A stretch of DNA of 63,312 bases, filler included, from Platydemus manokwari (lineage: Eukaryota): NCBI GenBank assembly GCA_037951405.1. It is 6 parts of 6 records of this genome, joined end to end, with 100 filler letters (N's around TTAATTAATTAA, not from the genome) between each part and the next. Parts side by side here need not be neighbours in the genome. Positions count along the whole stretch, not along the records: positions 53,385 to 63,312 come from JBBMOY011188211.1; 5 more parts are not named here. The stretch is one strand, 5' to 3'. The position numbers and the translations under genes were made by a program. Positions 53,385 through 55,906 of this stretch are shown here, piece after piece (position 1 is the stretch's first letter; every line of letters begins with the position of its first letter). Below the pieces are notes generated by a model that was not told where the DNA came from, did not search any database, and saw only the letters and a list, made by a program, of their open reading frames with translations.

Positions 53385-54133
53385 AATCCTTACTTTTCAA
53401 ATATTCTTCGATTCCCTTTGTAATCATTTCAAAAAGCATTTTCGTCATACCACCCAAATTACGTGGCATTGCATCATCAGTGCTTGACACAGGATTAGCA
53501 CTGGTTGCGTCATTGCTTCTTGCATTTTCGTTAACCTTCGTCATCGTCGTGGGCTTCATTCATTTGTTTAACTAATTGATTGGCCCTTTGGTGTAGTTTT
53601 TCAAATAAATATTATGATGGAATGTGCTTATAACTTAACTATCACATTTCTTGTAAGGAAAATAGAACAATTACAGCAAATATTTAACCCAACTAAAAGA
53701 ACCAATCAATTTCAACTTCGTTATTATGATATAAATATTATTTGGATATCATTACAATGTTTTTCATTCTTACGAATTGTTCAGAAAAATTATGCGATGT
53801 CATGATCATATAAGAATTATAAATTCAATAGTAACAACATATTTCCAGTAATGAGTTTTATTCTGTATTGTATGATCTGAATAAATACAAATTATCGTAT
53901 TTTCAATACAGGGAAATGCAAATCAATACAATCTCTGAATACCAAATACAGAAATATTCCAATCTAATCACGAAATCGTCCCGATTTTAGAAATGAGTAG
54001 AATTTATAATTCAACTATTTAAACAATAGCCGAATCTGTATGACGATCTATTAAAGAATTACGTCCAAATAGTGAGTTGAATTTGATATTTATTTATTTG
54101 TTATCATTGACAAAATAATTGGATCAGAATTTC

Positions 54134-54331
54134 ATGTTCAGAGGAATTTTATTCTTGTTTATTGCCTATCTGATCGTGATGTATGAATCCAAACCAAGTA
54201 AATCCGGAGAAGCAGAAACGGTCACTCAAGAAGAAAAAGAGCAACCGAAAAAACGTTTAATAGGGCTACTGGGAACAATATTGGGTGTTATTGGGCAAAC
54301 TGTGATAGGAATAATCGGTGGTGGACAATAA
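54134..54331 (+). CDS. 65-aa secreted prepropeptide (signal peptide, acidic spacer, KKR, Gly/Ile/Leu-rich 24-mer); candidate antimicrobial/cytolytic peptide precursor
   Basis: MFRGILFLFIAYLIVMYES-KPSKSGEAETVTQEEKEQP-KKR-LIGLLGTILGVIGQTVIGIIGGGQ*. Upstream TATTTAAA (~54016), a 56-nt GTGAGT...CAG 5'UTR intron candidate (54072-54127), and ATTAAA at ~54392. Confidence 0.78.
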   Translation: MFRGILFLFIAYLIVMYESKPSKSGEAETVTQEEKEQPKKRLIGLLGTILGVIGQTVIGIIGGGQ

Positions 54332-55906
54332 GATTCAATAATTTTCTAAAACAGATTGAAATTTTCAATTTCTTGTGATTTCAAAATGATTATTAAATTT
54401 TTTTGAAATTGAATCTTTGTTGTCATATAACCTTATCAACCATAATATAGCTGGATTATATGCTTATTGGTACATAAGGTAATGTGAAGTAAATGTATTT
54501 TTACTAATGAGACTTGATTAATTATTGTTGGTCAACAAACACTTTGTCTCTAGAATGAAAATCAATTATTATTTTATGTTGAGTATGATTAAAGTCCTTG
54601 CATATACACTACTTTAAAATATAGAGATGTTATTTAATTATCATCTTTTACATTACTAATTTCTCTTTGTTGTTTGCAAAAGTAGTTGCTAAGAATATTT
54701 AGATTCTTTTCAGTGTTCCTTATTTTACAGCTTCAATTCTTTTTTGTGAATATACAAGTGAATCATGATATTTTATTGGTAATTTTGGGGTCTACTATTG
54801 AATATTTTTAATTACTCTTGGTGCCTTTGACCATTGTCTGAGTCTTATCAATACTACTGTGTTCTAAAGACCTACTGGTTCGCATTAACCTAGTTGAGAT
54901 TATTCTTTCGCCTCACTCAACACGAGTCCACGTTTGGAGACATTATGAGGGGCTCAAGATAGTATTTAATTAAATTTTAAATTATATAAGAAATTTCAAA
55001 TCCAAAAGTGCCTCAAATCATCTTACTAAAAGATAATGAGATGATTCTGAAGAGTATTATGTATACTGAAATGAGGTAAAACCTTAAGGCATCTTCCGAT
55101 TGCAATTTTAAAAGACTGTGATGTTGGTTATTATTGCTGATTTAACAATATCTTATTACCTTTCTATGGTTTGAGGTTTGTCTTGATTGAAATGTTCTCA
55201 GAAAATATGAAACTAGGTTGATTTTCTGGTATGTATATACTGTGCATATACCATTTTTGAGAAATAAAGAATAGGCAGGAGAATGAATTTAAGTTAGTTT
55301 CTTTGAATTCAAGAAAATGAAATTGTATTCCAATTATGATACTTCGACTAAGCCTCTAAACGCCATCAAGAAGACATGTGCTCATTCGGTATTTCAAAGT
55401 GACTCAATAAAGACCTTCCAGCAGTAGTCTTCGTTCAAAAGACCAAGCCCATTCGTGCTGGAAAAAGATTTTGGTGTAAAGGTATATCATCGAGCACCAG
55501 TTAATCGCATTGAATATTTAAACAGTGTGAGAGCAACAAGATCAATGAAGTCTATTGCCTCTAAATTTTACAACTATTGTAGTGATAGACCCGCACCACG
55601 TGTTGATTAATTGAAACCAAAAGCTTGTTTTTGCTGTGATGAGCTTGGACACCAGAGGTTTGAATGGCCATTGCATAATAAATATATGGTATGCATTCAT
55701 GACGAGAAAGATGAAGCCGATATTCAAACCGAAAGTGAAGCAGGTTATTGTGTAAGCTCACTCTCAATGGAAGACAAAAAACTAGAATCAAACATCTGTG
55801 ACTATCAGGTCAGTGGGGATGAGTCAATAGAACACATCAATTAAAAATATAGTAAAAATAAAGACGGAGAGCAATCAATAATAGTTGCATTAGACAGAAC
55901 ATAAAA

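Follow-up and report, generated by a model that had tools for sequence, protein, structure and literature searches.

What is a 65-codon open reading frame (ORF) built like the precursor of a secreted peptide doing in the AT-rich, transposon-littered DNA of Platydemus manokwari? Is it a gene whose product is cut to release a peptide, a gene for a small membrane protein, or a frame without function? The frame lies on the plus strand of the window, a stretch of 63,312 nucleotides (GenBank assembly GCA_037951405.1) in which six parts are joined end to end with filler, and the piece analysed here covers positions 53385-63312 (JBBMOY011188211.1) at a GC content of 30%. A first-pass annotation made from the sequence alone had read the locus as a compact gene for a frog-skin-style prepropeptide that releases an uncharged, Gly-rich, amphipathic 24-mer. 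The anatomy named there, a signal-like start, a Glu-containing spacer, a KKR site and an uncharged Gly-rich 24-mer, was confirmed from the translation. The frame is non-random, and the locus is plausibly an orphan prepropeptide gene, predicted from sequence. We regard a prepropeptide gene releasing a membrane-active, uncharged 24-mer as the best explanation, one that we put forward tentatively. The parts of the frame are as follows.

54134..54331, plus strand: complete 65-codon coding sequence including its stop, read by translation from ATG 54134 to TAA 54329-54331
54134..54190, plus strand: signal-peptide-like segment, residues 1-19, with Arg3 and a hydrophobic core at residues 5-17; cleavage after residue 19 or 27 uncertain
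54191..54247, plus strand: hydrophilic spacer, residues 20-38, with 5 Glu and 3 Lys; predicted coil with a low predicted local distance difference test score (pLDDT 54-59)
54248..54256, plus strand: KKR, residues 39-41, a candidate prohormone-convertase/Kex2-type site with Pro at P4 and Leu at P1'; cleavage presumed
54257..54328, plus strand: uncharged 24-mer, residues 42-65; it holds 8 Gly and GxxxG twice, and as a helix it lines up Gly, Thr and Gln along one side

Coding character of the frame and search for relatives

The length of the ORF alone is uninformative because ORFs this long are common here, with 19 of at least 60 amino acids within 7.5 kb of the piece. We therefore counted features rather than length in 3000 second-order Markov versions of the piece (30 Mb), which yielded 32,575 ORFs of 50-150 amino acids. 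Of these, 303 had a signal-like start and 113 carried an uncharged tail behind a dibasic site; the two occurred together in none (0/32,575), and none of the 113 uncharged tails reached 25% Gly; these numbers overstate the significance, as the criteria were chosen after the ORF had been seen. One residue in three of the 24-mer is Gly (33%), as compared with 2.6% when the piece is translated in all six frames, a 13-fold enrichment, and in no reading frame of the piece does any other uncharged stretch hold 5 or more Gly in 20 residues. Analysis with Tandem Repeats Finder ruled out that this abundance of Gly stems from a cryptic tandem repeat. The GC content of the three codon positions (0.48, 0.35 and 0.32) and the 67% purine at first positions form a coding-like bias, and the 65 codons contain no Asn despite the 69% A+T of the DNA. 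A pure chance ORF is unlikely.

Searches for relatives were blank throughout. A word search over 5.8 billion clusters and exact look-ups of the protein in sequence collections returned none, an exhaustive phmmer search of 1.84 billion representative proteins gave 0 matches at E <= 1e-3, and no relative was present in metagenome contigs and loci. Queried with the 24-mer and the full protein, the PDB gave only a spurious kelch-repeat design (E = 0.37), and Pfam-A, scanned with hmmscan at E <= 1, yielded GNVR alone, a Gly-rich membrane segment, at a sub-threshold E = 0.01. The peptide strings did not occur in full-text papers, and the peptide was likewise absent from the supplementary files searched for PMC2953531, a paper on planarian prohormones. 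For paralogues the look-up was confined to the 9.9 kb of genome in the piece, where tblastn of the peptide returned the self-match only. Among the nearest clusters in a language-model feature search were C5orf46, bombinin, which ranked second, and the frog FSAP families, all of them small secreted antimicrobial precursors, with scores of 0.76-0.79 that serve as a lead only. How much should the blanks be allowed to say? Two controls bear on this. The best database match to the 210-residue reverse transcriptase (RT) ORF of the same piece, which is expected to be multi-copy in its own genome, was only 48% identical, and ten other ORFs of the piece were likewise absent from the protein collection. 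This genome seems not to be in the protein collections, so the lack of relatives says little. For the anticipated family sharing a prepro region, no paralogue was seen in the 9.9-kb piece or in collections in which the genome is seemingly unrepresented.

An ORF without function may have come about as a chance or decaying frame, as a coding relic, or as a two-transmembrane-segment fragment of a degraded membrane-protein or transposon gene in transposon-rich intergenic DNA. It would agree with the absence of a homologue in the word and phmmer searches, with the decayed retroelement remnants around the locus, with the abundance of long ORFs in the piece, with a GC content of the ORF region (0.31) equal to background, and with a start codon in a weak Kozak context flanked by TATA and poly(A) motifs that are not significant. 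We nevertheless consider it unlikely, given a combination of features absent from 30 Mb of simulated DNA, the Gly enrichment, the missing Asn together with the codon-position bias, an intron-like signal placed exactly before the ATG, and a region that is unlike the neighbouring elements and is not repeated.

A released peptide or a membrane segment

The 24-mer (G8 I6 L4 V2 T2 Q2) has no charged residue and, as a free peptide, a predicted monoisotopic mass of 2261.37 Da. Gly occupies positions 3, 6, 10, 13, 18, 21, 22 and 23, with GxxxG at 6-10 and 18-22; a GxxxGxxxG run was looked for in the 24-mer and none was found. The hydrophobic moment peaks at 100 degrees with a value of 0.27, as compared with 0.12 +/- 0.06 for permutations (p = 0.013), which is a modest helical periodicity. 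When positions 1-21 are drawn as a helix, their Gly, Thr and Gln residues all fall within 120-260 degrees except Thr15 (p = 0.003 for clustering on one face), and the one-face glycine stripe is real. The description of an uncharged 24-mer with Gly at helical-face periodicity, GxxxG included, was therefore upheld.

A cleavable signal peptide is recognized by a charged n-region, an h-region of 7-15 residues and small residues at -3 and -1. The N-terminus of the 65-residue protein has Arg3 followed by a hydrophobic core of 13 residues, over which the 11-residue Kyte-Doolittle means reach 3.2, and a core of this size has the length of a signal peptide, not that of a transmembrane segment. Of the 19-residue signal peptide first proposed, the hydrophobic signal-like segment is present but the cleavage site after residue 19 fared poorly, with Tyr at -3; an alternative site after Ala27, where Gly and Ala occupy -3 and -1, agrees more closely with the -3/-1 rule and lies 10 residues beyond the core. 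The spacer at residues 20-38 is only mildly acidic, with a net charge of -2. KKR is the sole basic, candidate convertase-type site in the 65 residues and would deliver one peptide; since its P4 residue is Pro, it is not a furin RXXR site. Structure prediction with AlphaFold2 without an alignment gave helices at residues 2-19 and 36-62, with a pLDDT of 68 overall and 78-81 over the tail. The unweighted Hessa sum over 19-residue windows of the tail is about +1.2 to +1.3 kcal/mol, indicating marginal insertion that results from the central Gln and Thr and the many Gly. Marginal translocon-driven insertion favours a released peptide.

Several properties of the frame pull away from a precursor that gives up its tail. 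The mean hydrophobicity of the 24-mer is 0.70 with a moment of 0.27 on the Eisenberg scale, which is transmembrane-like; in the Eisenberg plot, such values denote a membrane-spanning and not a surface-seeking helix. The term amphipathic, as first applied, therefore holds for the polar/Gly face and not for surface-seeking character. Basic residues immediately before a hydrophobic stretch of 21-24 residues would fit a membrane anchor too. The Tyr at -3 makes the signal site after residue 19 unfavourable and non-canonical. Pro stands at P4 of the basic site, and Leu at P1' is reportedly under-represented among cleaved dibasic sites, an observation ascribed to Rholam et al. (1995). The start context has T at -3, a weak Kozak match. 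With relatives and paralogues all blank, conservation support for the frame is nil. The criteria of the chance test, as said, were drawn up with the ORF in view.

If the gene is real but its product stays uncut at KKR, it would encode a small membrane protein, or micropeptide. Two forms can be drawn, one in which the signal is cleaved and a chain of 46-48 residues is anchored by its C-terminal helix, and another in which two helices form a hairpin with the Lys/Glu loop and KKR in the cytosol, the glycine stripe serving to pack the helix against a second copy or against another membrane protein as partner. The tail has the 21-24 hydrophobic residues of a spanning segment, KKR directly before the helix obeys the positive-inside rule, the single helix predicted by AlphaFold2 for residues 36-62 runs through KKR, GxxxG motifs are typical of transmembrane packing, and the lone whisper from Pfam, GNVR below the cut-off, is a Gly-rich membrane segment. 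Because the hydrophobicity of the tail and its rather small moment are membrane-spanning in type, the uncleaved membrane protein is a serious and live rival, even if we judge it somewhat unlikely. It has to contend with an N-terminal core that is too short, at 13 residues, for a stable transmembrane helix, with the Gln and Thr in the middle of a tail that holds 8 Gly and inserts marginally at about +1.3 kcal/mol on the Hessa scale, with the presence of only GGGQ after the helix and no stop-transfer charge, and with Pfam and phmmer searches that linked the protein to none of the known families of small membrane proteins.

The same tail may be viewed as the attachment signal of a glycosylphosphatidylinositol (GPI) anchor precursor, which would leave behind a tiny lipid-anchored peptide. 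An N-terminal signal together with a C-terminal hydrophobic stretch that runs nearly to the stop is the signature of such precursors, and Gly25-Glu26-Ala27 could serve as omega to omega+2. The spacer between this site and the tail would then be 14 residues, as opposed to the usual 5-10, positions 29-36 offer no small omega residues, and the mature product would be merely some 6 residues long. We consider a GPI precursor very improbable.

How, then, would the tentatively preferred prepropeptide gene work? From the anatomy we infer transcription, splicing, secretion, cleavage and activity of the locus. It would be a small taxon-restricted gene with a short non-coding first exon, an intron of 56 nucleotides and one coding exon for a 65-residue preproprotein. 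The N-terminal hydrophobic segment would direct entry into the endoplasmic reticulum and be removed somewhere between residues 17 and 27. In the secretory pathway, a protease of the Kex2/prohormone-convertase type would cut after Lys39-Lys40-Arg41 and free the uncharged 24-mer, the Glu/Lys-rich spacer having kept the peptide soluble until then. The freed peptide is expected to form a helix with the Gly/Thr/Gln stripe on one face and Ile, Leu and Val elsewhere, to partition deep into membranes, and to self-associate through its small-residue face or aggregate; it may act as a membrane-active defence, mucus or cytolytic peptide. A bolder proposal, which we hold to be doubtful, is that an invertebrate lineage independently evolved a one-peptide precursor that releases an uncharged, glycine-striped helix of transmembrane grade. 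Electrostatic attraction to the membranes of microbes would play no part in the action of such a helix; it would insert and, by way of its small-residue face, assemble with copies of itself to form pores or amyloid-like fibrils. It would be an animal counterpart of the plasticins and candidalysin with no sequence relatives.

If expressed and cut, the product would bring an uncharged and very hydrophobic peptide into the signal-spacer-dibasic-peptide design, where cationic peptides otherwise predominate, and would mark another independent origin of that design outside amphibians and fungi. Such peptides bear on how helices free of charge select or damage membranes and on self-assembly driven by GxxxG.

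Gene model and transposon surroundings

The annotated gene was compact, with an intron in its 5' untranslated region (5'UTR) at 54072-54127. The signals that flank the coding sequence are listed below.

54016..54023, plus strand: TATA-like TATTTAAA, 49 nucleotides 5' of the proposed donor; weak, as such motifs occur 0.16 times per 100 nucleotides in the piece
54072..54127, plus strand: proposed 56-nucleotide 5'UTR intron with a GTGAGT donor, a branch-like CATTGAC at 54105-54111 and a CAG acceptor
54392..54397, plus strand: ATTAAA, a possible poly(A) signal 61 nucleotides past the stop; not significant in this composition

The A of the branch-like CATTGAC is 17 nucleotides before the AG, and the CAG acceptor ends 6 nucleotides before ATG 54134. 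A donor-acceptor arrangement of this kind precedes 0.7% of simulated ATGs and, with the branch-like motif, 0.12%; among 400 real ATGs in the piece, the full set of donor, branch and acceptor is found at one, which is ATG 54134. When the predicted spliced frame is followed upstream, it meets a stop at TAG 54027-54029 and no ATG on the way, so that ATG 54134 is the first in-frame start and the coding sequence is complete. The compact gene with its 5'UTR intron is thus a self-consistent model whose intron-like signals are rarely produced by chance. The acceptor at 54127 might alternatively be used in trans-splicing. The poly(A) signal and the TATA-like box, which had also been cited in favour of a real gene, are present as motifs and carry no significance in DNA this rich in A+T: ATTAAA or AATAAA occurs 0.5 times per 100 nucleotides in the piece, and a second ATTAAA is found at 54050. 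The interval from the TATA-like box to the proposed donor also holds a plus-strand upstream ORF of 4 codons, from ATG 54040 to TAA 54052-54054, which would be transcribed only if the transcription start lies 5' of 54040.

The same acceptor allows the frame to be read as the 3'-most coding exon of a larger gene, with the CAG at 54127 joining an upstream exon in phase 0 and the apparent signal being an internal helix of a multi-pass protein. An exon that begins at 54128 is in frame with the ORF (AAT TTC ATG), and two hydrophobic helices linked by a charged loop resemble a polytopic membrane protein. With the nearest consensus donor, however, at 54072, the upstream frame is shut by the TAG just described; the roughly 570 nucleotides up to the divergent ATG 53559 hold only random-looking AT-rich ORFs; and the ATG, Arg and 13-residue hydrophobic core right after the acceptor have the look of a true start. 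No similarity to any membrane protein was detected by phmmer. An exon of a larger gene is improbable in our estimate.

The divergent ATG belongs to a minus-strand ORF of at least 58 codons, which opens with ATG 53559 and continues past the edge of the piece (53385-53559). It has no family in Pfam or Atlas and is probably exon 1 of a divergent gene whose ATG lies 574 nucleotides from that of the peptide frame.

Could the peptide frame be part of a transposable element, the case that the first-pass annotation had named as fatal to its reading? Two remnants of the Ty3/gypsy type lie downstream. The first is a decayed element at about 55450-58100 on the plus strand, broken by many stops, and the second is a pol remnant at about 61313-62652 on the plus strand that runs towards the end of the piece. 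Their recognizable parts are these.

ORF 55611-55844, plus strand: CCHC-like knuckle of the first element, broken, with the last Cys reading Trp
55907-56251, plus strand: RT fragment of the first element (PF00078, E = 1e-3)
56540-56893, plus strand: integrase H2C2 domain of the first element (E = 1.4e-8)
57854-58060, plus strand: envelope-like ORF of the first element; its match to PF24664, the Monjiviricetes viral fusion glycoprotein, is sub-threshold (E = 3.4e-5)
61561-62193, plus strand: RT ORF of the second remnant, 210 amino acids (PF00078, E = 1e-22); best relative 48% identical

The envelope-like ORF suggests that the first element was of an envelope-carrying, retrovirus-like kind. Taken with the base composition and the shortness of the intron, such an element would point to an invertebrate host. 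The two elements showed no similarity to each other by tblastx, and no Rfam match was obtained. No direct repeat and no pair of long terminal repeats (LTRs) covering 53385-55600 was present in the piece, and the peptide ORF as part of an LTR or other repeat was rejected, there being no covering repeat or LTR pair and only the self-match by tblastn. As far as the piece goes, the peptide ORF appears to lie outside both Ty3/gypsy remnants: no repeat, LTR partner or element similarity was seen for it. Short orphan genes beside transposon debris can evidently be spotted from raw sequence, and the locus remains a predicted gene.

Comparison with known peptide systems

The precursors of the frog dermaseptin superfamily (PF03032, FSAP_sig_propep) have, like the frame described here, a signal, a Glu-rich spacer, a basic site and one C-terminal peptide of about 20-25 residues, and the likeness in layout that had been noted at the outset is present in the translation. 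The differences begin with the spacer, which here is only net -2, and with the 24-mer, which is richer in Ile and more hydrophobic. The gene differs too: the host DNA has 30% GC and the intron 56 nucleotides, an invertebrate-like look. In frog genes two coding exons share the prepro region, the first of them encoding the signal peptide, whereas the whole coding sequence at 54134-54331 is uninterrupted and the sole proposed intron lies in the 5'UTR. No match to PF03032 was obtained at E <= 1 in Pfam-A, and phmmer was likewise blank; with no profile match and a single-exon coding sequence, membership of the frog family was rejected. The frog peptides nearest in character are plasticin-L1 and leptoglycin, which are uncharged, Gly/Leu-rich and secreted (PMC10876013). 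They share the charge-free, Gly-rich character of the 24-mer, and plasticin-L1 even contains GGGQ (PMC10876013). Plasticin-L1 has no antimicrobial activity, its minimal inhibitory concentration being above 500 uM (PMC10876013), so an antimicrobial function of the 24-mer should not be assumed.

Bombinin came second in the feature search with a score of 0.79, below the level of evidence, and no match to PF05298 was found at E <= 1 in Pfam-A, so membership of the bombinin family was ruled out. Bombinins H are hydrophobic and Gly-rich, with an Ile-Ile-Gly-type N-terminus; bombinin precursors yield two peptides, and the H peptides carry Lys-Lys at an amidated C-terminus. The frame, in contrast, holds one peptide with neither charge nor an amidation signal. 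These blanks at E <= 1, with frog-like clusters at lead level only (0.76-0.79), are in keeping with the convergent origin suggested by the first-pass annotation, of whose overall interpretation the layout, the non-randomness and the convergence stood and the gene family found no support. Its view that the product is not a typical amidated neuropeptide is also borne out. Prohormones of amidated neuropeptides carry peptides flanked by basic sites, usually in several copies, with a C-terminal Gly as the amide donor, whereas the frame has a single KKR and ends in GGGQ-stop, where neither the stop nor a basic site is immediately preceded by Gly.

Outside animals, candidalysin of Candida albicans is a hydrophobic, Ile/Gly-rich helix that Kex2 releases from Ece1p and that is freed after Lys-Arg (PMC5784256). 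Its N-terminal 20 residues align with the 24-mer through many matches of Ile, Gly, Gln and Val, and the local alignment score of 36 compares with 24.5-26.6 +/- 4.9 for composition-preserving shuffles (z = 2.0-2.4, p = 0.02-0.05). At only about 2 standard deviations above the shuffles, the alignment speaks for resemblance more than for homology, and the likeness appears to be one of type and mostly compositional. The two systems also differ in build, as Ece1p is a polyprotein of 271 amino acids with eight peptides separated by KR and the locus has one basic site and one peptide, and as the C-terminus of candidalysin is cationic and that of the 24-mer is not.

The last comparison is with glycine-zipper and GxxxG transmembrane helices and with membrane micropeptides. 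GxxxG is the classic motif of transmembrane packing, and the 24-mer shares with such helices its spanning length and hydrophobicity, a glycine at every third or fourth residue along one face, and GxxxG, which it contains twice. It has no GxxxGxxxG and no match to the glycine-zipper families of Pfam, and by its sequence is not a strict glycine zipper; unlike such helices, it comes after a signal-like segment and the tribasic KKR.

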